DNA from: Podarcis melisellensis
Taxonomy: Eukaryota
Length of the DNA: 64,000 nt
Reading direction: 5' to 3' (one strand)
Assembly: GCA_964234715.1 (NCBI GenBank)
Contig: OZ174279.1
Positions 108 through 64,000 of the stretch are shown piece after piece; within the stretch, counting starts at the first letter, position 1, and each line of letters opens with the position of its first letter. Position numbers and translations under genes: made by a program. Below the pieces are notes generated by a model. That model ran no database searches. It was given only the letters and a program-made list of their open reading frames with translations, and had not been told where the DNA came from.

Positions 108-41225
<41,118 letters not shown>

Positions 41226-42446
41226 GTCGCCGGCTTCGCGGCTCCCTCGGCTCCTGGCAGCAGTGACGGGGTGGGGTGGCGGGCAGGAAGGCAAGCGGCT
41301 GGCTCCCGCGGGCTGCTGAGAAGCTGCGAGGGGAAGGGAGTAGGTATAAAAGCGGCCGAGGAGACACGTAGCACTTCCCCGGACCGCCTTTCCAGCCCAC
41401 GGCTCACACCCCGCGCCCTCCTCTGGCTCCTCCCCTCGCTACTTGCTCTGCTCCCGGCTGCCACAGGCAGGAAGAGTGCGGGGTTTTTTCCCCTTCCCTG
41501 TGAGGGGAAAGGGCTCCGCGAGAGTATATTCACAGGAAAACTTTTCTCCTCTCGTGCCTGCGTCCTCCCCCCCCCCCGCGCCAGTTAGGACCCGCGCTTT
41601 TTTATTGTTTAAATCGCCTCAGACGGCGCTCGCTTAACAAAAACGTGTGTTCTTGCTCGGATAGGGGACACCGTCTCACCCACGCGTTTCCCTGGCTATA
41701 GGTTTGCAGGCTGGTGCTGGACGGAGGCGAGGTCCAACCCTCGCCAAGAATCTCACCTTTGTGCAACGAACAAAAGCAACAACAACCCCGGGCTTTCCCT
41801 CGCCTTAAACGCTGGTTTAGGGAAGCCTGAGAGCAAAAAAAGCAAAGTACTGTATGTCAAAGGACACTCTGGGTGATTCTGGGCTGGGAAAGTGGCTGCC
41901 TATTTTGTTTTTCTATATAAACCCTGCTTCCCAGCCCAAAGCAGCTTGCAGTGACACAGCCACGCAGGCAAGTAAAGGCGCGATATATTAGGGATACTTG
42001 GAGGTGTTTATAGCACTTCCTTCTGGTCCTCGGCAGTTGTTATCATAGCCTATCACAGCCAGCCACATCCTCAGCACACCTTTAAAGCACTCTGATGACA
42101 CTTACAACAGTCATGGAGAATCAGCGGTTTGTCAAAGGCTGCTGACCTTAGAGAACTACAGTTCCCAGCACCCACGGAAACTACATTTCCCAGGATTCTC
42201 TGTGGCTGCTAAAGTGGCGTAAGAGTGCTTCATATGTGTTCTAGAAAGAAGAAGCAGTAAGGTGGAGACATGGGCCGATGGATCATAGTAAGAATAACGA
42301 CCCAACAGTGTGTTTCAACCCTACAGGCAGGGCGTGAGGTGGCAGTGCTACCAGCACATTTAAAAGACACACACACAGCTTTCAGACACAAAAGCAACAC
42401 CGTGGCAGCTTCAGGCAGTAGTGCCATGAAAAGTCCTCTCCTCCAT

Positions 42447-42786
42447 AAAGGTAAAGGTGACCCCTGACCAGGTCCAGTCGTGACTGACTCTGGGGTTGCG
42501 GCGCTCATCTCGCTTTATTGGCCGAGGGAGCCGGCTTACAGCTTCCGGGTCATGTGGCCAGCATGACTAAGTTGCTTCTGGCAATTTAGAGCAGTGCACG
42601 GAAACGGCGTTTACCTTCCCGCCGGAGCGATAGCTATTTATCTACTTTCACTTTGACATGCTTTCGAACTGCTAGGTTGGCAGGAGCAGGGACTGAGCAA
42701 CGGGAGCTCACCCCTTCACGGGGATTCGAACTGCTGCCCTTCTGATTGGCAAGTCCTAGGCTCTGTGGTTTAACCCACAGCGCCAC
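42447..42786 (-). mobile_element. Sauria SINE
   Basis: Reverse complement of the 1834 and 37896 copies. Confidence 0.92.
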
Positions 42787-43613: not shown

Positions 43614-46600
43614 TAAATAGCATTATAGTGGGAAGGTAAACCCAGCATACATCTTGTGGTTCATTGCACTAAAATAAACCCTTTGTACAGAACAAGCAAT
43701 TGCTCTATCACACATTTTAAGTGATATAGAAGGAGAACATGCTATACTCTATAAGCAGTTGATTACATAGATAAGAAAATGTAAAACCAAGCCATAAAAC
43801 GTGAATAGCTAATCCACAGAAAGGTACTTATGGTGTGATAAAATTTCCATTATGTCACACACACGAGTTTGAACCAACAACATGCTTAGAGTCTCTGTAC
43901 TCATTTGGAATGTAATCCATTGAGATGTGTTTGTTTGTTTGTTTGTTTGTTTGTTTGTGGCTCCAAGAGTTAAAACCGGGCTGGAAGATCCAGCAAAAGC
44001 TTTGTCACAAAGGAAATTGAAGTAAAGTGTTAGAATACTATATAACTGATGTAACTCCAGGTAGGTACAGATAAGCAGAGATCCTTTTTTCAAAAGCAGC
44101 ACTCTTCTCACTCCCTTCCTCAAAGAACTGCAAAATGTACACAATATTTCCTGGATAACATTTTAAACTGTTGGTCACTTTTGCTAACAAATATCTAAAT
44201 AGAGTGAATATGTTGGCCTGAGATATTTCTTCTTGAACAAATAAAAACTGCCCCCCTGGCAACACAACACAGCTCCCTTCTTGTAATAATGAGGATTAGT
44301 TCAGATTAGTATACATTTACTACATTTATTATTCTATGCTTCTGTTGTTTCAGAGGATTTACTTACACACTGTGAATTCTCTCAGGGTTACTTTTTGTCC
44401 TACAGCTGGTGAAAAATAATATCTCATGAGCACATATTCTCATACTTGTGACAATGAGCTTCCCTAAGACAAGAAACATTATTCAAGCTTATTCAGGTAT
44501 TAGTAAAATTAAGATGGCTGGCTGGGAAACTGGGGAAAGTGGGTGTGTGTGTTACTTCCCTGCACACATATCCCAGGTCTTTCCAGCAGTTCATAAGTTG
44601 TTAAAAAAAAAAAGTGTCCACTGATAAGAGCAAGGGAAGGGGCTTGGCCTTTTTTTTTGTTTGTTTGTTTCCATACACTGGCCCATTGACCAATGTAGTT
44701 GCTGACTGTTATTCCTAAATATGGTTTGTTCTCTTCGAACAATAAATTGTAAAACCTGAAAAATGCATACTGAACACTCATAGGTAATGGAGCAAAACTG
44801 ATTTACAAACAACGGTCCAGTTTGCATGTGAAGCCGAGCTAAACTATGGTTAAGCAAGAGCACAAGGGTGTGAAAGTACAGGCTGTGACCATTTTGCGGG
44901 CATTCAATTGACTTGTGGGTCATTTTGGACCCAGAAGAGGGCAAAACGGTTGAAAGGGCAGCTAATAAATACCAGTTATCACCAGGGAACATAATCCAAC
45001 AAAAACAAACTCACACCTCAAATAAGTCAAAGGTCTGCATGAAGAGGAAAACTCAAATTGATGTTTGTTCCGACTGAGCACTTAAGAGCAGTTTTCCCCA
45101 AGATTGAGAGGAAGCAGTGGGTCAAGAGGAAGTGTGGATAAACCCACAGTGAGTGCACAGTAAATGGGAGTGTGAACACAGTCTCCACAAAATGAAACCA
45201 GAGATCCATCTCACTGTCTGGAGAGGGAGGTTCCAGGTTTTTATTGGAAGTGATTCAACTTCCCCAAGGATGGAAGTGAGTGCTACCCATGGAAATCAGT
45301 GGAGAACACCAACATCTTAGTAGTGGCTGGGCAGCAGCATGCCTACTGCCATGCAAAAGTATCAGCAGAGATAGGATTTACTACTCTATTGTCATATTCC
45401 ATGAGAAAAAAACATTTTGAAATAATCCTGCCAATGAAACGCCAGTGTAAATATAATATATTATTCCCATATTGCTGTTTTGGAGGTTGAGAGAGAGCAA
45501 GAGAGAGGTTCACAACAGCCATGCAATGGAGCCAATATCAATACTGCAGGTTACAGGTCAAATGCTTGTGAAGTTTGTCCTTGCATAATAGGTTTTAGGA
45601 AAAAATAACAGGAGCTTTTTTAAAACCAAACAAATGTGTATTAAGTTAAGCATGTAAAATACTCTCCTGTTTTGATGAGGTGTTGAAATACCCTTGTGTC
45701 TGCCCAAAGGAAACAGAGTACTGCACTCATCTTTAAAGATGTTTGTTTTCCCCCCCTAATCTGAGGCTGAACATCCATAGTAACTCATGGGATTTTAACT
45801 TTTGCTGGGCTGGTTGCTCACTCATGCTAGATTTGTTGCTTGCCCAGCCAGTAGGGACTGCAGCTAGAAAAGCGGGGATATTGCTTAAGAGGTTGCAAGG
45901 CTCCAGAATCCTGTGGATGGAAGGAATCAAGGAAACCAGTCGAAGTGCCTGAGGCTGCTTTTCATGGGAGATTACGGTAACTGGAGGGGAGCGACAGGCC
46001 TAACACACACACACACACACACATCCCATTTGTTGCAGTGCTTCCCAGGTTGAACAGGTTGGCAGGAAATGTAGTACAGGTTGCTCCTGAAATAAGCTGG
46101 CAGGGGCAGGATGAATTTTACAGCCTGAGGACCACATATCAGAGGCGGGTAGGGCCTGAAGCAAAAGTGGATGGAGCAATTAAAGTACAGTTTACCTACA
46201 CACAGTCCAGAAGATGGGAAACTGCAAGCCTCAGCTCTGCCTCCTGAACTTGCAAAAGGAGCACAGACGATTGGGCAGGCTGTTGAGAAGGATGAAGAAC
46301 TCTCAAGCCACATGTGTTGGATCCAACCTTAAGGTGGGGTGTGCTAGCCCTGCTGGACAAAGTGGGGCAGCAAAGGGAGGGGATTGCATGGACAGGTGGA
46401 GTCCCCCCAGCCCCAGGCGACTCTCGAGTGGAATAACAACTCAAGACAACGTGCTACAGGATTAAAATTGGCCACAACTTTGTTAAAGTTTCAGATGTAC
46501 GGAGACCTTGGCTTAGGCATTGGGCGTTTATCCCTCCCAGTCCCTGGCCGGGGATCTGGGGAACATCAGGGTTATCCAGAATGTGTGGGGATTGGGCTGG

Positions 46601-48785
46601 CTCTGGAGAACATATGTTCAAGCAGGGAGCCCGCCCCCCGTTTCGCCGCCATTGCAGGGAAGAGCAATGACATCCAATTGGCGTATGGCCAATGCCTCCC
46701 CTCAAAACAACCCCTTTAACAGGGAACCCTGGGATCACCGCTGCAGGGGGAGCGTGGGCCACTGCTTCACCCGCCCCATTAAGGGAAGATAGAGTAAAGG
46801 ATTCTGCCCAATGCCTGAAACCGCCAAAGTTGTGACATTTTGCTATAAGGAAGGCAAAACCTGCCAATGCAGGAAAATTCCTTTCCGGCCCTTCAACAGC
46901 GACCATAATGTAGCACCGCCCTCGTACCTGTGGAGAAGAGATTAACCTGCAAAGGAAGGCTTAACTGAGGGAGGGCAGGGTGGGAGAAGCTCTGGAGCCA
47001 ACTGACAATTCCCAGGTAAGATCTATTGTGTGAGTATGGCGGTCCCTCCTCCTACCTGGCCAGGTCCCCTGGCAACGCCTCCCCAGGTGGGATTGGGTAA
47101 CTGCTTGAGGTAGGTGGAGACCTCCAGATTTCCAACCTGGGAAGGGCGAAGCCAGGCTATATGGCTGGGAGCCACATAGGATCTGGGGGACTGCATGCGA
47201 CCACGCAAAAGGTGACCCCCATTTGATGTGGGGAGCGGTCATTCCTGTCTTAGGATCTGTAGAGCTGGTAATGATGTTTGGAGAGCGCTGCAGGGTCAGG
47301 GAGAGTTGTAGCATTTGGCAATGTGCCACAATTGTTAATTAGAATTTACATTTTTTAAAAAATTGCAGTCGTGTCCACAAGCTGCTTAACACCAACCAAT
47401 CTAAGCGAGTGTTAGTTAGGCAGCTCAAATGTTTGCTTAATGGTACCCATGTTCTCCAACACACTGAATCGATTTCAGTAGCTTACTCTGAGGCTATGGG
47501 AAGAACTGGGGCAAAAGTTGCTATGAGGCCCCAGGCCTGTGCAAAGGCTTGCACAAATATCTTGCATGACCTGGAAGATGTCAGGTGGTAACGACCTCAA
47601 CAAACACAGGTTTATGATATACCGCACATTTGTAGGGAGAGATTTCTCACGCAATGCTTTCATCACTGTTAATTGCACTCCTCTTGTATGTAGACAGGAT
47701 TATGTTGTTGTGGCACAAAGGGGAGCCTGAAAAATGTAACCTTTAGTGTGAGTTTTGTTACCTCGCTCACATCAACTGCCATTTATCACCAATATTTTAA
47801 AATGATACTAGTTTGCCCCTTACAAAGCTACAGTTCCAGCACCTTTGAAGAACTACAGTTCCCAATATTCTTTTTTTTTTTAATGTGCTGAAATGTACAC
47901 AGATACATCCTCCTAAAAGCTTAAGAATTATGTTTTGGGCATTTATGGAAACATACATACGTTGTGATGTCAGAAATTTGTTGACATTTATTGCTCTTTT
48001 TTAATATTTCAAAAATCCCAAAGGGAAATGTTCATATTTGTTGGCAAGTCTGCTGTAGTAGGGAATGATCTGCTGATCCCAAACACTCTCACAGCTAAAC
48101 TAACCAGGGTAACACCCAGCATCACAACATTGTATTTTGCCAATATTCAGATTTGTTTATTCACCCACATCTAGCCCATTAATATCCCTCCCGAAGCAAA
48201 GATCCACAGTGGAGAAAATGACTCCAGGTCGACTGAAAATGAAAAATAGACCTTCAGCCTTCAGATGATCTCATCCAGCCCCTTCTTACAATGTTAAATG
48301 GGACCATTTACCCGTCCTGGAGAAGTACTTCATAGTGGCTGGCCTTTGCCTTTGTTTACTTCTTACAGGGAAAGCGCAAGACTTGTTCAAGGGAAACACT
48401 TCAATGGAGTATAGGTAAGAACAGTTCCCAAGTTCTTGTGTGTCCTGGAGCTCCTTTGAGCTTCAGCTGTGCTGTTTCAGCACATTCAGCCACCCCAACA
48501 GCAATAAGGACTGGCCAGGTAGACCTTAAGCGGGTCCTACATGAATTCTGGAATGTAGTTCAGTAAACATTTAGAATGATGACACAACATAATCAATGGA
48601 GTAGTCTTGCCAGAAACCTCTTCTCTTGTAATACCAGCCAAATATATTAACAGAGATAACCATCAGCTGTGGCTTAACTCCACTGCTTTGGTACCACACC
48701 CCTTCATCCAATCTTTGGCTCTGAAACAGGAGTAGCCAACACCCTCCAGATGTTATTGGACTACAATAATCAATGTTTTATATTT

Positions 48786-48873: not shown

Positions 48874-51778
48874 CCACATCAGCTGTGGGAAAGGGCAGTA
48901 GATCAATGGCAGAAGATCAATCAGGTTTAATCAGCAGCAACTGAAGGCAGGGCGGCTGGGAATGCCACTTTCTGAAATCCCAGAAAGCTGCTGCCAGTCA
49001 GTGTCGGCTCAGTATAATGTCACTTCCTATGTTGCTCTGCAGCACTACACTGGCTACCCCTGCCCTAAAACTTTAGATTCTAAACTAGCCTTCCTTAACC
49101 TGGTGCCCTTTTAGATGTTTCACATTACAATTCTCATCGATGCCAGCCAGAATGGCCAATGAGTGATATTTGTCATTCACTAAAATACCTGGAGGGCACC
49201 AAGTTGGAGAATGAAGGATGAATGGGGATGGAGAGAAGCCCCAGAGACATAGTGTGAAAAGGGATACACAATTCTGTCCCCCACCCCAAAAGAGAGTCAA
49301 AGTGGATTATGCAGGTCTGAAAGACCAGGCCTACATACATCAAATGTAATCGCTGTCTTGGGCCAATGGTTTTGTGAAACTATCATCATATTCTGGGTGT
49401 AACATTTTGTACGGCACTCAAAATCTGTCTTTGTGCTTTTGAGGAATCTTATCTGGAAATGACCCAGTGATTAATTTAAAAGTACACCCACACCATTTCA
49501 AGATATGGCGTCCTAGCATATGTTTTTCTAGCTTTGCTTGAAAAATGTATGAGGCTTTCTGTTGCTCAAATTATAATAAAATGTTGTGGTTGCACAGTGC
49601 TGGTAAATTACATTTCATTGCCATCTTTAACCTCTCTCTTTCTCTGTGCTCTAGATGAATCATGTTAAGCAGAAGTGGAACAAAAAGAAATATTATTCAC
49701 ACAGCGCATGCTGAAGAAAAAATATCTAGAATTTATCTGGTTAGCCTTCAATATAAACATACTAACTAGGGAGAAAGCCCTTTTCAACACAATATGACTT
49801 GCTGCCGTGTGAACATTGCATAGGATTGCAAAGTCAATACAACTTTTGGCTTTAATTTTGCATCAATGTTAATGTTTTCCCCTTGTTAACAAAGCTAAGA
49901 AAACAGCAAGCTTTCACACAGCTAAGATGTTTGGCAAGAAGTTCTCTGAATAGAGAGGGGCGGAGAAGCAGTACAAAAGTTCTATGAATGTGTGTCTGTT
50001 ATGCAACAAGCCCTGTGCAATTCCTCTTTTGGATCGTGGCAGTTATTTTGACTCTGCTAATCTTGGCAAGTATTGGGTGTGTTCATAAAGTATGCTTGAG
50101 ATCTTCGGGGTGGGGGGGATCTTCACCTAGAAGCACTCAAAACCAGCAAGGTAATTTGAAGGGATTCAGTTAAACAGAATGGAGGGAGCTCAGTTTCAGA
50201 TAATTCCCATTATCCCCTTTTCGTAGTTGCCTTTAAGCTAGTTATCTAACATCACACAAAGTTCACAGCCTGATCAAGGTACATTTTCTGCAGGTAGTTA
50301 TTTGCTCACAGTTTTGTTTTTTTGTCAGGACTCTGAACGGAGTTGTGTAAATGGCTTATTCAGCTATTTGCCACTCACATCTAAACTCAGGCTATGTACA
50401 CACCAGCAGCTCAAAAAGCAGCGAGGTCATTCCTGCCACTATCCCCCCCCCCCCCGCCACCCCAGCATTTCAAGTCACTTTTTATGTTGCTTTTCACACT
50501 AGAGAGGAGGCGTGGATGTCTTCACCTGGTGCCCATTACCTGATTCGTTCCCCAGTGCCAAATTCCAATTCATCAAAGCTGTCATCTGCATGCGCTCTCA
50601 CCTGTTGCATGTGCAACAGCTTCCTGAAATGCACACACCACTTCAGTTTAACCATGACTTCCGTTTGCTAATTGGATGGAAGATGGTAAGAGCGAAAGAG
50701 CAACAGATGGGGCCATTTCTCAAGAAACTACACAACACCTTTGCATTGCGGCTAATGTCTTCTTCAAAACAGCAGAGGTGGGAGCGCTCTGGAGCCAGAG
50801 TAAGCGGTAACATATACACAGCCTCAGAATAAATCCTTTTGCCAAAGGATTAAGAAGGCAGGGGCATTACTGTGTAGAGGTCCCAAGCAGCTGAAAAATG
50901 ATCTAGTTGAGAACATTTTGCTTCCTTCTTGCCTCCACATTGACCTCAAGCAACAAAGAGGAATGCATTTGAAGCTTTTGCTAACACAAAGATGTGTTGG
51001 ATTTCAAACAAATGCGAAACTAATCTTGCCTCTGGCAAGTGTTCAGAAATGGGAATTACTAGTTTCCCAACAGCTGTGTTAGTCTTCAAATTAATTATTA
51101 CTAAGCAGACCGATCCTGTGCACATTTACTCAGCAGTAGACCCTGAGGTGTTCCACTTCCTCCCACATAAAAGTACGCACAATTAATTAAGGAGTATCCC
51201 ACCTCATGCAGTTTTATTGGTTGCAGATTGATCACACAACACCAGTAACAAACAAACAAGGACCCCCCAAAAAAACCTAAAATGCAACAGCAACGTTAAT
51301 TTTATGCACTGATGAGTTGAAGCAATGTGTCTTGCTACTGTAATGTGAGTGTTTTCTTTATAGGCTTACTGGGAAAGGTGTGTTTTCATGAGGAATCTAA
51401 AAGAAAAGAGGGGGGAGAGGTAACTTCAATGTGTGGGGTATTCCTGGACAGGGCAAGGCAAAATTGGCTGAAAGGGAGAATGAACTGAATAACATAAGGG
51501 AGGAGTCCAAGAGACAAAGTGAAGGCCATGGGCAGTTTATCGCAGAAAATTATAACACAGTGCTTTTTTTGGGGGGGGGGTACTCAAGGGTATGCAGTAC
51601 CAGCACCTTTAAAAATAAAAAAATCATCGGATGACAGTAAGACTGGAGGAGGAGACTGTAATGCAAGAAGGAACTAATGTGATTTAGAAATGGTTTTTGT
51701 GTGGAACAAGTTCTGGGTGACACCATCAGGGAAAGGAAGCTAAGAAGACCTGAATCATTTCAGTTTTGCATATAGTTT

Positions 51779-52103
51779 GGTAAAAGGTAAAGGTAAAGGG
51801 ACCCCTGACCATTAGGCCCAGTCGTGACAGACTCTGGGGTTGCAGTGTTCATCTTGCTTTATTGGCTGAGGGAGCCAGCGTACAGCTTCCAGGTTATGTG
51901 GCCAGCATGACTAAGCTGCTTCTGGTGAACCAGAGCAGCGCATGGAAACGCCGTTTACCTTCCCGCCAAAGCAGTACCTATTTATCTACTTGCACTTTGA
52001 CGTGCTTTCAAACTGCTAGATGGGCAGGAGCTGGGACCGAACAACGGGAGCTCACCCCATCACAGGGATTCGAACCACCAACCTTCTGACTGGCAAGTCC
52101 TAG
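51779..52103 (-). mobile_element. Sauria SINE, 5'-truncated
   Basis: (AAAGGT)n tail on the plus strand and body homology. Confidence 0.92.
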
Positions 52104-53488: not shown

Positions 53489-54207
53489 AATGCAGCCCTT
53501 GGGCTGAAAATGCCCCTCAGCTCTGCTCTAGAAGTTACAGTTTGGAGGATGTGTGTGTGTGTGTGTCAATCTGACTTCAGTGTGCATGCAAATAAATGCA
53601 TACGTGAGTGTCATGCCCTTCTACCTCATCCCCTCAATAAATGTCTGTATACACAGAATAAATGTTTATGGGTGTGCGTGACCTGCATCTGTTATATGGG
53701 AAGAACAGCTGAAACGATTGTGATATTGTGCTTTCCTGTTTCTTTTTAATAAAGCAAACAGCTATAGTCAGATTACTGTCAAGCAGGTGAAAGAGAACCT
53801 CCAACTATATGGAAGGGAATGGTCTAGCATTGGAGTGGCGAGAAGAGAAGCAATACACACACACACACACACACACAAACACATGTATGTGTCTCTATTC
53901 TCATCTGTGACATATAACAAGGATAAGAAGCTGCCCGCTGCAAGCTATACTTCCTGTGATGCATTTTGAGTGATTTTAGCATCATTCAACAAGAGTCAGG
54001 AATTGGAGAGAAGGACTGCTGAAAGAATTACTCAATATTTACAGGGAAACATAAGTTGCCAAGTCATCACGAGTTACTGGCACGCACATTTGAGCCCAAT
54101 CATTAGGAGAGCTATGTCCTTACGTGACTACAAAAAATGAAATCATCATACTATTAGTTCTGCATGAACTACTTTCCAAGCACCTGTGATGTTGAAATTC
54201 ACAGCCA

Positions 54208-54943
54208 GTTGTTCAGATGATGGGGGGCATGGGGGTGCTAGGAGTGGAGTAGTACTTCTGATAGTGGACATGATGTGCTCTTTCTGGGGTAGTTTGTCCC
54301 CCCTCAGTCCCAACTCTGCACTCAGCTCTCACCTATGGCTCCTAGAAGCTGTTAGCATAGGACAGTAGCCACACCCTGGGAAGAGCTTCACCTGGCCGGC
54401 TAAACCAGGTGAGGATAGCCAGTGGGTCTCAAACCCTCAGTGAGTCTGGGGCTTCCCCTGCATGTGAAGACAGTTTCCAACAGGTTGAGCGGACAAGACC
54501 AATAGCGGGTCCACTGGTCAGGAAGATGATTGCTGTATTGTAGAGGGGAGTGAGTGGCAGATGGGGTTCAACCACCTCTGAAGGTAGCTAGGAGAAGGAA
54601 AACTCTGATCCTAAACCTCCGCTGCCTAGCGGGATATCTGTGGGAGAAGAAATGGCTAAGGAGTAAACCCTACACAAATCTAGAGTCCCTAAGAAAGTTG
54701 GATGGTGCCTTGAATGCTTCCTTCCAGCAACTCCTGTAGCCAAGCTGGTTCCCAACACATTGCTCTGCTTTCCTTTGGGCCACATCAGTGAGGCCAAGAG
54801 GTGGGGTCTTGTCATCTGGACAGCCCAGGACCTCCCTACACACCACCAGGCTTGCATCCTGGAGAGATCACGTCAGTGCTGCTAATGCAACCACTTTGAC
54901 TTCACCCCTGGAGGCACACTCCATTGTCTATTGAGACAGACAG
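54208..54943 (+). mobile_element. Non-coding, probably RTE-clade non-autonomous retroelement or 5'UTR
   Basis: GC-richer structured block without an RT ORF. The motif ctaggagaaggaaaactctgatcctaaacc (54588-54617) resembles RTE 5'UTRs (recognised from memory, unverified). HDV-like fold near the 5' end. Confidence 0.55.
54232..54413 (+). ncRNA. Putative HDV-like ribozyme (degenerate copy)
   Basis: P1, P2, P3, P1.1 and J4/2 elements occur in HDV order; details are in findings. Confidence 0.5.
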
Positions 54944-55174
54944 AAACTAATCCCAAATGCTCACATGATGATAAGAAACGTGACTTCCCACAATAATTTA
55001 TATGCATAAGCATTCTATACCATTCACAGAAGACTGTCATATGGAAGAGATACTATCGCCCTCTTCTCTCTTTTGTTGTTATTGCTGGTAAAAACATTGT
55101 ATATATAGGTATTAGGGGAACTCTACTCCAAGAAGATTTGAGTAAGATCAATTCAAAGCTTTTAATTCAGCTAT

Positions 55175-55523
55175 AGGTAAAGTGACCCCTGACCATTAGG
55201 TCCAGTCGTGACCAGCTCTGGGGTTGCGGCGCTCATCTCGCTTTATCGGCCGGGGTAGCCGGCGTACAGCTTCCGGGTTATGTGGCCAGCATGACTAAGC
55301 CACTTCTGGTGAACCAGAGCAGCGCACAGAAACGCCGTTTACCTTCCCGCTGGAGCGGTACCTATTTATCTACTTCCACTTTGACATGCTTTCGAACTGC
55401 TAGGTTGGTAGGAGCAGGGACCAAGCAACGGGAGCTCACCCCGTCACGGGGATTCGAACTGCTGACCTTCTGATCAGCAAGTCCTAGGCTCTGTGGGTTA
55501 ACCCACAGCGCCACCGGCATCCC
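55175..55523 (-). mobile_element. Sauria SINE, full length
   Basis: TSD aattcagctat. Confidence 0.93.
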
Positions 55524-57409
55524 TAAATTCAGCTATTATCTAGTATCTATTCTGGGAAATTGTTCATTGGTCCACTGTGCACTTGGACACCGCTTAAGAT
55601 ATCATAATCATTTTTTTACATGATGGTTCCTGAGATCAAGGAGCAGGGTTTTTACCTGTTTGGATACAATTGGATTCCATGTTGAATCAAGAAGGTGGAC
55701 TGAACCCTTTCAAAATTGTACTGATTTTTCTTTTTTTCTTAGGACTTCCAAGCAATGCCAGACACAAGCCTGCTAGTAATTAATGTTTTAGGAAGGTCCT
55801 AAAATCTATAACGCTGTGTGTGCAAAAGCCTCTGTTCACGTGATGTATTAACACATATGCAACTTGCTTTTATGTGTGTCCATTATTCCACCTTCACTTG
55901 GGACTGCTTCATCAATGCAAGGGAGGGTGTGGTGAAGAGAGGCTGAAAAAGGAGTCATAAAGCTTTCCATGGAGAAGCTGTGGCTTTTCACTACGGAAAC
56001 AAACCCACACCTTTTCCCTCCCAAGAGCTGCAAAGAACAAACAAGCAAAAAACCCAGCTGACTGCAAAGCTGGTTATACAGGCTTAAATACCTTTGCTGC
56101 TGCTGCAGCTAGACAGCCCTCTACTTCCCTTTCCCTCCATTTGCCTGATTAGAAATATCTTTGCCACAACATGCAAATAATCAGTATTACCTGTTTCAAA
56201 AGGTTATGTGTCACTCAGGTCCTCTAAGTCTAAGCATGCATGCAAGGCCTATGGAGATGAGGAGCACTGGCTTTGCATCAACATGTTTACTCTTGCATTT
56301 TAAAACATACAGATTGCTGCTGCAGTCTAAGGCCAGTCTTCAAGAAGTCAGGCAACTGTTTGCCTTGCTTTTAGTCAAAGATTGGGAAGTACACCCAAAG
56401 ATCTTACAGATCGTCTATTAGGCAAATCGTATTCCAAGTACCGGCACTAGCTACCCCAAATGAGAAATGAGATTCCTTTATGGATGCTGCGATATGCGAA
56501 CAGCAAACGAAAGCGAGCAGCAGAGAACGTTTATGTGAGCAAGCATTGCATTGTCTCCTCATGACAAGGTAGTATAAGTGCAAGTAGATTTCTTTATAGA
56601 ATTTGTAATAAATTTACCCACGTTATGACTCACCAAAATATTTGCATGATGCCAGAATTCTTCCTATGGTTGAAAATGCAGAAAATCTTTCTAGAGCAGG
56701 GATGGAGCCACAATTAGGGAGCCACTAAAAAAGTCCATTTTGTTATTTTGTTTCTTAAGAAGGGTGTTTGTGAAGGGCAATGGATTGCTAAGATATTTTT
56801 GCATGTGTGTACAAACTGACTGCCTTGTGAGAAGGAAATTTCTCTCCAGTGAGCCATCAATGTGACTCTTAGCACCTCCATCTGTCTGCATAATTTCTCT
56901 ATGCTCTTATTTCTCTGTATCCAAAACTGTGCATTGCAGTGTATTACCATTATTGGGTTCGGACTGTACACAGAACAATTTAAGTCTGAACCTTTTTCTG
57001 TCTCTCTCTCTCCCTCCCCCATCCCTGTTCTAACAAATGATCTGTGTTTTCAATTCTGCTGTGTCAGCTTCCTGATCAGCAGGAAGGTAGAAAACTCATA
57101 TGGGTAAATTGTGTAACCATTCAAGAAGACAGTTTTACCTTAAAAAAAAAAAAGAAACTTAATTGCAGGGAGTTTTAATTTCTTTGAAGCAATGTAAACA
57201 ATACTTTTTAATCCACTTGTCATCACTTCATTGAAAGTTGTTGAGGACTAATGGCTTGCTGCCAAGAAGAAAAAGAAAAAGCTTACATAAGGCAAATACA
57301 ATGCAATTGTTACTTTGTAGGTAGTAACTATTTTGGGGTACCATTGCAAAGCTGCTCTGTAAACATGAAACTGCATTTTCCTGGACATTTGACTACATTT
57401 AACATTATA

Positions 57410-57617
57410 CAGTCGTACCTTGGTTGATGAACGCCTTGCGACTTGAACAATTTGGCTCCCAAGCACCGCAAACCCGGAAGTGAGTGATCCAATTCACAAA
57501 CGTTCTTTGGAACCCAAACATCCAATGCTGCTTCCTGAAGCCAATAGGAACCCATGCCTTGGTTTCCAAACATTTTGGAAGTCGAACGGATTCCGTTCAA
57601 CTTCCGAGGTACCACTG
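57410..57617 (+). mobile_element. MITE family A copy (internally deleted)
   Basis: CAGTCGTACCT...AGGTACCACTG ends with TA flanks. Confidence 0.85.
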
Positions 57618-57960
57618 TAGTCTTAAAATATGGAGATATCTTTAAGTGTTATGACCCATGCTAGGACTACCAATGAACAGCTGAATGAAAGACCCAAGGG
57701 CTGCCAGCTTAAAGCTCAAGGACAGAAGCATTTGACCCACTTTGTAAATTACAGAAGCCAAAGCCTGTTCCTGCACTAAAATACATTTCCCCACCTTCTG
57801 CAAACATTTTTAATTGATTGCAAATCATGTCCCCGTTTTATCTTCAATGCTTTAAAAGTAGCCGCTCAAATCACTATTTTAACAAGCACTTAGGAGTGGC
57901 AATTTAGAAAGCAGGTGTGCTACCATAACCTCATACCACATTTAAGTAGGGCATCAGGTA

Positions 57961-58495
57961 CAGTGGTGCCTCGCAAGAAGAAATTAATTCGTTCCACAAG
58001 TCTTTTCGTCTTGCGAGTTTTTCGTCTTGCGAAGCACGGTTTCCCATAGGAATGCATTGAAAATCAATCAATGCGTTCCTATGGAAACCGCCTTCAGACC
58101 AGGTCCAGGGACAGTCTGTCCCCCGACCTCTTCTGAAGGCCGGCGGGGGGCGAAAGTCTTTGCTTCCCCCCCGCCTGCCTTCCCGGGACAGCGGAGACTT
58201 CTTAAAATGCGATCTTAAAATGCTGGCGGGCGGCAGCGAACCCTTCGCTGCCGCCCGCCAGCATTTTAAAAACCTCGGGACAGCGGAGGAATTCTCCGCT
58301 GTCCCGGGGAGATTTAAAAGCCCCCGGGAAGGCAGGCAGGGGGGACAAAGACTTTTGCCCCCCGCCAGCCTTCAGAAGAGGTCCAGGACCTCTTCTGAAG
58401 GCGGGTGGGGGGCAAAGGTCTTTGCTCCCCCCCCCGCCTGCCTTCAAAAGCCCTCCGGGAGCATTTTAAAATCGCCCCGGGACAGCGGAGGAATT
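57961..58495 (+). mobile_element. Tigger-like non-autonomous element, family C (right end missing)
   Basis: ta|CAGTGGTGCCTCG left end. CpG-rich interior with nested palindromes. Confidence 0.7.
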
Positions 58496-59138
58496 CTCTT
58501 CCTTTTGATGACTCATCACTTCCTGTTGATTCTTATCTTAGGACATGGGTTGCTGAACAGGTATAAAATTGTGCGTGTATATGTGTGTGCACATACAGGT
58601 ATATATGTATAGAATACAACTTCAAGCAGAGAGGCAGAGGCTGCAATGGGAGGTGCTAAACCCTTTCCCAGCCCTGTCACCACAACACCTTCCTGAAACT
58701 GAGCTCATTTCCAGTCTCCAAGCCCAGACAGGGGGAAAAAAGCAGCTGGCTGAGAAAAGTTCACTAGCCTCTCTAGTTTGCTCTTCTTCCACTTGAAATG
58801 ACTACTCCCCACATTTTAGGTCTGTATGGTGCATTTTGTGCCTTAAGCCTAAACATCTATCCTGCATTTAACAAATGAGACAAATCAGTCCAATAATTAC
58901 TTTTTTTATTTAATTTTTTTTCTTGGAATGGCGTGATTTAGCTATCTGACAACATTTGAGGTGTTTAAACAGCTTGTACTATCGTGAAGTTTTCCTTCCT
59001 TTGTTATACAGCAACCAAACCATTATATGATATGCAGGAGTTTGAAACCATAAACTGAATTATAGGCACACAAAAGGCTCCACTGTAAGCACACACCTTA
59101 GCAACCACATTGCTCACAAATACTTATATTTATCCAGT

Positions 59139-61437: not shown

Positions 61438-63800
61438 CTAGAAAGTTTAAAAGCCAAGCAAAAGATGATTAGTCAGATGAATCTAAGGGTGGATCTACAC
61501 ATTCGGGGGAAAACACGCTATAAATAAGTCAGAAATTAAATCGTTATAACAAAAGAAAAAGAAACGCTATGGAAAATCACATATATATTTTTTTACTCTC
61601 CAGCACCATCTGGTATTGCATGTTTATAACGCATTCAAAACGCTGTTTTTTTTACTAATGTAGTGGAGTTCCAAGCAGTGAGGCACAACTACTGTATAGT
61701 TACAAGAATTAGCAAACTATGCTACTGTAAAAGAGTTGTTTTACTTTTGGTGGTCTGAACCGTAGGAATGGCATGCTAAAAAACACTTGGTCAAGAAATC
61801 ATTTTTTAAATAATAATAATAACAATAATATGTTATTTTAAAGAAAAGAACTAGAAGATTACAGAGTTCAATCTCATTCCCGGTTAAGAGATGACCTGCA
61901 GTTACAGCTGAGATCATGTGGATATTGGGGTGCAGTGGAAGAGAGCAATTCTCTAAAGAGAATGAATGGCAAAGCAGAGAATGTGCAACTCGCAACTCAT
62001 CTACAGATGATGCGCTCACTCTGTAGTGATTTTTTTGGCACATGAATGGCGACGACTTCATTCATCCTATTGTCCAGGCAAAGTGTCACAGCTTCTCTTG
62101 GATTAGTTTCTCTCCACTGCTACCCACCTGTTTAGAACGGCCATGTTATGGACCTTTCTCCCTGTACAACATACTAAAAATCCAACTGTTCCTCTCTGTC
62201 CTCGTGGCTACAACTCTGGTTTATGTAAGCCCTCTGGCCTCTTCCTCTTTCACATCTTAGTCCTCTCCCGTCTATCGAGAAACCAAAACCAAAATTATTC
62301 TCATTTCTCACTGATCTGACCACATCATTTGTTTCCTTCCCTGACTTCCCATGATCTTCTATAGTCAACAGAAAGCCTGGCCTTCAAGACCTCTCTCTGC
62401 CCCTGCTCAACCTATATTTTGACTCCTATTTCTCATTTTATCTCTGCCCATGATCTCCACTCCTCCACCTTGACAGTCAACTGACCCAATGCCTGTTTCA
62501 TTTCAGATTGTAAGTTCCTACAGCGTCTATGTTGCTTAGGTAACTCTAATGTACCGCGGTGATGGTACAATATAAAAAAGTAATGCAAAAGCAGCTGTCT
62601 AGTTTCTTCTCCCCAAAACTATTATCATCACTACTATTTATAGTTAATATATTTTTTAGAAAATTTAAAGGTCCGAGATCCCATGTTACTCATGATTCCA
62701 TGTGCTCATGTTATAGTAAAGCAGAATGTCAACTCCAGTATTTTTATTCTTTGTATGCTTTGAAGTAAGGTTGTGGATTTTTCTCAGTTTTCTCTTTTTG
62801 TAAACTGCTTTGAGGTGTGCCCCCCGCATCAAGTGGTGTATACATTTTAAGAAATGAATAAGTATCTTTAGAGAGTCCCAGCTAAACCAAGCTTCTCAGT
62901 AATAAGCTTGATAAGATACTTATCACACTATGCTGCCCCTACCTTTAGAAGCTTGTAACATAATCTATATAAAGGAACATACAGGTGTAACTATAATTTG
63001 CATTAGGGGAAACCATGCTTTACATATGTTGTGTTTTGTGAATGGAATAAACAAAGCCCAGTTCATAAATCCAGGTTTTCATCACAATTAAATGTAAAAA
63101 CTTTCAAGCCTTAGAATTATTAGCAGCAGCTATGACAAGCATACGAAGGCCAAGCAACAAGCCAAAGCTAAAATACAGTTTTTAATTCAACAGAGGAAAG
63201 TTCTTGGTACTTTAAGTTAACCTGTAACATCAAGAAGGAAATAAAATGCAACTACTTGTTTGACCTGTCCCATTTAGAGAAGAATGCTTTGAAGTATCCT
63301 GCTTCTGAAGTTTAAAAATGACACTTTGACATAATAAAGTACTGCACAAGTTATGTTATATCCTCAATTCTTTATAACCGGTCGCAAGCATTAAGGAAAT
63401 AAGATAGATTACTCATTTCTCCAAGAATTCATATACATATTTTTGTGCTTATGGTGGGGTAGTACAGAAGAAATTCCCCACCATACTGTGATTTAGCAAG
63501 CCCAAGAAAACAGACTAAAAACTGTTTTTACATAAGGAAATGAAGGTATACAATTTCCCCTTTCCCATAATTACTGACCCAATGCAAACAACAAATACCA
63601 AATTTCCTTCTTTTCTTTCTTTCTTTTATTTTATTAAGAAAACCAACACAAGTGAATTTAGTCTTTGGTCAGGATGAACATTTTAGCTGTTTGATGAGAT
63701 GCTTCCTTTACCAAAGTAATTGCTTCCTATAGTCTTTACCATGTGGCCTGTGCTTCTTAGTACATGCTTCTTACATTCAGGTTTCTCTGATGCATAGCCT

Positions 63801-64000
63801 AAAGGTAAAGGGACCCCTGACCATAAGGTCCAGTCGTGGCCGACTCTGGGGTTGTGACGCTCATTTTGCTTTATTGGCTGAGGGAGCCGGCGTACAGCTT
63901 CCAGGTCATGTGACCAGCATGACTAAACCGCTTCTAGCGAACCAGAGCAGCGCACGGAAACGCCGTTTACCTTCCTGCTGGAGCGGTACCTATTTATCTA
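63801..64000 (-). mobile_element. Sauria SINE 3' part, cut by the window end, in the last MINPP1 intron
   Basis: Homology to the other copies. Confidence 0.92.

Follow-up and report, generated by a model that had tools for sequence, protein, structure and literature searches.

R2, RTE, L1Tc and Baggins elements have their 5′ ends processed by HDV-like ribozymes (PMC6765202, PMC3774820), and the first-pass annotation of a 64,000-nucleotide stretch of Podarcis melisellensis DNA (contig OZ174279.1, here called the window) relied on this role, which is well established in the literature for R2 and RTE, when it placed a fold of this kind at the 5′ end of a non-coding, RTE-like element. The question raised by the locus is whether RNA of the plus strand once worked as a ribozyme, or whether its letters fall into a ribozyme-like pattern by accident. 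The answer that we favour, tentatively and as something a little short of probable, is that the stretch is a decayed and inactive relic of an HDV-like ribozyme, which once headed a plus-strand non-LTR retroelement, possibly of RTE type.

Core helices and conserved letters

The 182-nt stretch at 54232–54413 can be drawn on the plus strand as an HDV-type nested double pseudoknot with its strands in the canonical order, and is made up of the following parts.

54232–54237, plus strand: 5′ strand of P1, GGGGTG, pairing with CACCCT at 54372–54377 (6 bp)
54239–54326, plus strand: J1/2, 88–89 nt, with a single closed rod at 54242–54323 that resembles a P1.2 peripheral domain
54327–54334, plus strand: 5′ strand of P2, CTCACCT at 54328–34 with T54327 added as a U:G pair
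54337–54339, plus strand: 5′ strand of P3, GGC, pairing with GCC at 54368–54370 (3 bp)
54340–54367, plus strand: L3, 28 nt, consisting of UCCUAG, AA, a hairpin (54348–53/54361–66) and A
54368–54379, plus strand: 3′ strands in series, GCC (P3), A54371, CACCCT (P1) and GG (P1.1)
54380–54399, plus strand: expected place of P4, empty of any usable helix
54389–54411, plus strand: competing hairpin (7 bp, −10.9 kcal/mol), which occupies the 3′ strand of P2
54400–54406, plus strand: J4/2, CUAAACC, 7 nt, with the candidate catalytic C at 54400
54407–54414, plus strand: 3′ strand of P2, AGGTGAG plus G, giving 7 Watson–Crick pairs and an eighth pair, T54327:G54414

The fold as first annotated held in its helices and coordinates and had to be corrected in its account of P2, J4/2 and P4. 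All pairings of P1, P2, P3 and P1.1 were found at the positions given for them, P1.1 being possible between the CC at 54341–42 and the GG at 54378–79, and the G:U wobble that had been reported at the cleavage site is present, with G54232 facing T54377 and closing P1 where the cut is proposed to fall, 5′ of G54232. At the seventh position of P1, C54238 stands opposite A54371 as a mismatch. P2 is the longest helix possible between its two regions, with a duplex energy of −11.1 kcal/mol, and the mismatch that had been ascribed to it is absent, its seven Watson–Crick pairs being perfect.

The letters expected around an HDV active site are also in place. The opening of L3, UCCUAG (54340–45), provides equivalents of U20, C21, C22 and G25 with the HDV spacing kept; active HDV-like ribozymes conserve two of these, U20 and G25 (PMC4227795). 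The J4/2 strand, annotated as the five nucleotides G-C-T-A-A, is in fact seven nucleotides long and runs from C54400 to C54406. A cytosine is present there at 54400, a candidate for the catalytic position by analogy with C75 of HDV, yet it lies 6 nt away from the 3′ strand of P2, the distance of C75 from P2 in HDV being about 3 nt. In 54380–54399 we found no helix of at least 4 bp with a usable loop, which counts against a ribozyme; P4 had been described as decayed, and its loss as a working helix is borne out, but mere decay is too mild a term for a helix that is missing altogether. P4 is dispensable in minimal HDV-like variants.

Oversized insertions in J1/2 and L3

Both of the unusually long segments of the fold turned out much as first described, J1/2 as a segment of some 89 nt with hairpin potential and L3 as a loop of 28 nt with a stem-loop inside it. 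The rod in J1/2 leaves linkers of only 4 and 3 nt. Its folding energy on the plus strand is −29.0 kcal/mol (z −1.34), which counts for the ribozyme, and on the minus strand it is much weaker (−19.8 kcal/mol, z +0.63), so that the stability of the rod favours a plus-strand RNA. Among the controls, 9–14% gave a closed structure and about 1% one that was both closed and equally stable. The extra 22 nt of L3, placed after the equivalent of G25, likewise form a closed hairpin that closes as inserted, for which the comparable figures in random 22-mers were 10% (closed) and 1.9% (closed and equally stable). Both oversized inserts behave like tolerated insertions. We know of no natural HDV-like ribozyme with an L3 expanded to 28 nt, and no report of a hairpin insertion in L3, or of HDV-like ribozymes in lizards, was found in the literature searched.

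These inserts also bear on another reading, namely that the plus strand encodes a genuine and conserved RNA structure at the end of a repeat which does not cleave, its 28-nt L3 and missing P4 being incompatible with catalysis, and which would serve instead in, for example, protein recognition or the start of translation. A J1/2 rod whose stability is specific to the plus strand, and closed hairpins, are as expected of such a structure, the want of a natural precedent for the L3 hairpin points the same way, and a role in helping translation to start has been proposed for HDV-like folds at the 5′ ends of elements (PMC6765202). What such a reading leaves aside is that catalysis is the simplest explanation for the letters kept in L3 (U, CC and G), for the G:U of position 1 and for the J4/2 cytosine, and we consider it improbable.

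Folding energy, covariance models and competing structure

At E≤10 the Rfam models of the HDV-like, CPEB3 and drz families had no match, even with the search confined to 251 nt, a negative that is weak evidence because the models penalise long insertions. Taken as a whole, the 182-nt stretch is no more stable than its shuffles (z −0.29), and in its minimum-energy fold the 5′ strand of P1 is paired elsewhere and the 3′ strand of P2 lies in the local hairpin at 54389–54411. With no pseudoknot penalty yet charged, the HDV-like fold comes at best to about −63 kcal/mol, and the nested alternative to −64.6 kcal/mol. The same hairpin can be taken as P4 in an alternative register, but P2 is then weak (54331–36/54422–27). 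The lack of an Rfam match, of an energy signal, of P4 and of an RTE domain are all in keeping with a fold that arose fortuitously.

Chance occurrence of the fold

A lax HDV descriptor, wide enough to admit the 54232 site, finds 20 sites in the window compared with 17.1 ± 4.3 in dinucleotide shuffles. When the descriptor is given the helix strengths of the 54232 site, two sites are found in the window versus 0.9 in shuffles, the second of them at 50928–50815 on the minus strand. Requiring UCCnnG in L3 as well leaves 18 sites in 67 Mb of simulated sequence, or 0.017 per 64-kb window. The simulated background was first-order Markov sequence, and the core searched for in it consisted of the helices together with the G1:U pair, UCCnnG in L3, GG after P1 and C before P2; this core alone occurs at about 0.27 per Mb. 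In 79 Mb of simulated sequence there were 16 core sites, not one of which also had closed inserts in both J1/2 and L3, a result counted for the ribozyme. The point estimate for the full constellation is about 2e-4 per window, equivalent to a few per 1.5-Gb genome, and is unusual for a single window, yet within reach of a genome-wide scan; moreover, the list of features was partly fixed after inspection of the 54232 site, so that the real chance rate must be higher than this estimate.

These figures cut both ways for a fortuitous origin, which is helped by the frequency of the core and by the post hoc choice of some of its features, and is harder to reconcile with the missing double closure among the simulated sites, with a J1/2 rod that is specific to the plus strand and with active-site letters in exact HDV spacing.

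The dispersed repeat adjoining the fold

The first-pass annotation had placed the fold in a dispersed family of retroelements. This was upheld for a part of the DNA downstream of the fold but not for the fold itself, which no known relative detectably covers.

54555–54897, strand not assigned: part with relatives elsewhere, showing non-coding homology to 12 pseudo-ORFs

A HMMER search with a 94-residue stop-free frame of the minus strand (54591–54872) matched two pseudo-proteins (E 1e-7 and 2e-5), and a profile made from these two brought the total to 12 (P0001–P0012), each on a contig of its own from ENA assemblies (6–35 kb), Logan (1.4 kb) or NCBI (0.9–1.2 Mb). They are rich in Trp and Cys, 87–274 residues long and each the sole member of its own cluster, and no Pfam domain was found in any of them. 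They align to the window and to one another only with frame changes, and the homology is that of a non-coding repeat at the DNA level and not of a gene; the 12 are ‘proteins’ that gene callers made from copies of such a repeat. Judged from these alignments, 54555–54897 belongs to a dispersed repeat with at least 12 relatives on separate public contigs.

The homology of the present copy stops at about 54897, and 10 of the 12 relatives run on for at least a further 250–640 nt. On the other side, the C-terminal parts of the relatives showed, against 54200–54600, just a short LP....E.HLP match at 54555–54587, and none of the 12 ORFs gave detectable coverage of 54232–54413. A plus-strand match of two relatives at 54298–54342 (E 0.3–0.8) was dismissed as compositional. 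The fold may nonetheless have been part of the same repeat, as the relic reading supposes.

Further copies were sought in several ways. No second copy was found within the window by blastn or nhmmer at low stringency, word searches with the pseudo-ORFs at 54591–54857 (minus) and 54361–54540 (plus) gave no match, and a DNA pattern for P2, P3, L3 and P1 had no match among metagenome contigs. In genome contigs this pattern matched twice, both times in Micromonospora coding sequence, and the matches were set down to chance; they lie at 7359–7407 of locus L001 and 3516–3564 of locus L002, in what we take, by eye from the translation, to be the AMP-binding enzyme motif TSGSTGRPK..GHT. The 25-base ribozyme-core pattern involved shows that coding motifs rich in GC can look like the core. 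A translated search of metagenome contigs returned one locus (L003) which has no DNA similarity and was likewise attributed to chance, and three scans of viral contigs yielded nothing or chance matches in GC-rich phage contigs, a fourth such scan, made with P0005, returning no match.

Ends and orientation of the element

The stretch is non-coding, as first annotated, and no ORF with a Pfam domain was found in 54.1–55.0 kb or downstream. Its description as RTE-like was not supported, and no RTE endonuclease or reverse transcriptase domain, RTE-type tail or similarity to a SINE tail was found, and its placement at the 5′ end of an element is in doubt, as the relatives reach well beyond the right-hand end of this copy. 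No tRNA-like head was found in the stretch, nor any similarity to the Bov-B-type tails of Sauria-type SINEs or to anything else in the window.

54210–54222, no strand: candidate direct repeat, ending 9 nt upstream of G54232 and matching 54958–54970 at 11 of 13 positions

At junctions formed by HDV-like ribozymes it is normal to see a few extra, untemplated bases upstream of the site of cleavage (PMC3774820). The repeat was equalled by 12 of 200 shuffles in narrow windows, and in wider windows the candidates for a target-site duplication (the 11/13 match and an exact 8-mer at 54122/54978) were equalled by about a third of shuffles. No significant target-site duplication was found around the stretch, and without one, or a second copy, the borders of the element are undefined.

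Orientation is a difficulty for the relic reading. A plus-strand retroposed element must keep its 3′ end, so the fact that 10 of the 12 relatives outreach the copy on the right argues against a relic, and on the plus strand the copy has to be either an internal-deletion derivative or the product of a later deletion. A minus-strand orientation would make it an ordinary 5′-truncated fragment, with the ‘ribozyme’ as the antisense of its 3′ end. It is quite possible, though we hold it below an even chance, that this is the case, the fold being fortuitous and the DNA a piece of a non-coding repeat that is dispersed, probably a truncated element of the minus strand. In its simplest form this explanation takes the DNA to be the 3′ untranslated end of a retroelement on the minus strand, 5′-truncated at about 54897, and the ‘ribozyme’ to be the antisense either of the last ~190 nt at the element's 3′ end or of unique DNA next to it; the fold would then reappear wherever that end of the repeat family recurs. 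For a minus-strand element, the extra length of the relatives on the right is what 5′ truncation usually looks like, and the left border, read on that strand, carries two tandem CCCCCAT-like units followed by CATCATC, short terminal repeats of a kind seen at LINE 3′ ends. Against this, neither a coding remnant on the minus strand nor a known tail was found.

Other features of the window

The remainder of the window contains several other features.

288–543, 1832–2189, 19145–19521, 37895–38248, 42446–42786, 51783–52103, 55169–55523 (minus strand) and 63799–64000: copies of a SINE of about 350 bp
5269–5682 and 14346–16081, minus strand: exons with PUA_2 and APS-kinase domains, read as PAPSS2
24344–26143, minus strand: LINE fragment with an RVT_1 domain (E 1e-27) and the motif YADDTQLY
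43812–47338, minus strand: five long stop-free stretches (117–168 codons) with no Pfam match
58000–58500, also 57407–57620: GC-rich (0.58), strongly palindromic repeats

The SINE is present in about eight copies with a tRNA-like head and 72–91% mutual identity, and we take it to be of the Sauria type; a perfect 11-bp duplication, AATTCAGCTAT, lies on both sides of the copy at 55169–55523. From its YADDTQLY motif the LINE fragment is presumed to be L2-like rather than RTE. It is followed at about 24.1–24.2 kb by a simple-sequence run, judged from poly-Leu and poly-Tyr in the translated frames, and smaller related pieces lie near 6.0–6.2 kb and 31.4–32.0 kb. As the sole reverse transcriptase of the window (24.3–26.1 kb, minus) was judged to be L2-like, the window was rejected as a source of an RTE seed protein; no Pfam matches were found in its other long frames. 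The stop-free stretches at 43812–47338 are possibly an ORF of an unrecognised element or a compositional effect. The palindromic DNA at 58000–58500 scores weakly with many miRNA hairpin models, all under their gathering scores (the best, mir-763, with 43.8 vs 100 bits), and probably represents either a foldback repeat or, upstream of PAPSS2, a region resembling a CpG island. If exon 1 of PAPSS2 lies near 58 kb, the fold would be in the first intron of this gene and antisense to it.

A working model and its significance

If the stretch is a ribozyme relic, a working copy may be pictured as follows. Read-through transcription from a host locus would yield its RNA, which would fold into the double pseudoknot of P1, P1.1, P2 and P3 while the long J1/2 rod brought P1 and P2 close to each other. 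The J4/2 cytosine, with a Mg2+ held by the U/G pair of L3, would then cut 5′ of G1 and so set the element's 5′ end. The family would be unusual in that the 3′ half of L3, the catalytic loop, holds an inserted hairpin, and the present copy would be one without P4, with a competing hairpin over the 3′ strand of P2 and with everything past about 54897 lost. The broader proposition, that there is a vertebrate retroelement family headed by an HDV-like ribozyme which tolerates an L3 hairpin plus a J1/2 domain of the P1.2 type, seems to us doubtful; on that view, relatives on contigs of other origin might be a sign of spread between hosts.

Either outcome would have consequences for the search for such ribozymes. 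A real fold would extend ribozyme-processed retroelements to squamates and would mean that the HDV active-site loop is able to carry a helical insertion, which current search descriptors forbid, with the result that whole families would be invisible to them. A fortuitous one would serve as a warning that relaxed HDV descriptors pick up about 17 chance sites in 64 kb, and that a chance match inside a repeat recurs genome-wide and mimics a family.

Comparison with known systems

The site shares with the HDV-like ribozymes of retrotransposons (R2, RTE, L1Tc and Baggins) the strand order P1-J1/2-P2-P3-L3-P3′-P1′-P1.1-(P4)-J4/2-P2′, the G:U at the cleavage site, the cytosine in J4/2, the lack of a promoter or ORF nearby and a location within a host gene or next to one (PMC6765202, PMC3774820). 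It differs from them in its 28-nt L3 with a hairpin, in having neither P4 nor a match to an Rfam model, and in that the search around it found neither a retrotransposon ORF nor a tail, nor a target-site duplication of significance. A 5′-truncated fragment of a LINE 3′ end is the other obvious comparison, and here the likeness is in the length of about 0.7 kb, the non-coding and multi-copy nature and the one side that is shorter than in the relatives, as against the absence of a recognisable LINE ORF remnant, a known tail motif or a target-site duplication.

Like the core of genomic HDV, the site has an L3 beginning with U-C-C-U-N-G, a CC–GG pairing after P1 and a P3 of 3 bp (PMC4227795). Unlike it, L3 is 28 nt and P1 6 bp, compared with 8 nt and 7 bp in HDV. 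The J4/2 of HDV is about 4 nt, compared with 7 nt at the 54232 site. From the RTE-linked Agam-2 ribozyme of the mosquito, which carries a P1.2 domain, it is set apart by a P2 of 7–8 bp instead of 12 bp and by giving no match to the drz-Agam models of Rfam. Large structured J1/2 domains pinch P1 and P2 together and activate the Agam-2 ribozymes, and it is in this respect that the two are alike, the site at 54232 having a long closed J1/2 whose short linkers would join P1 and P2 in the same manner (PMC4908430).
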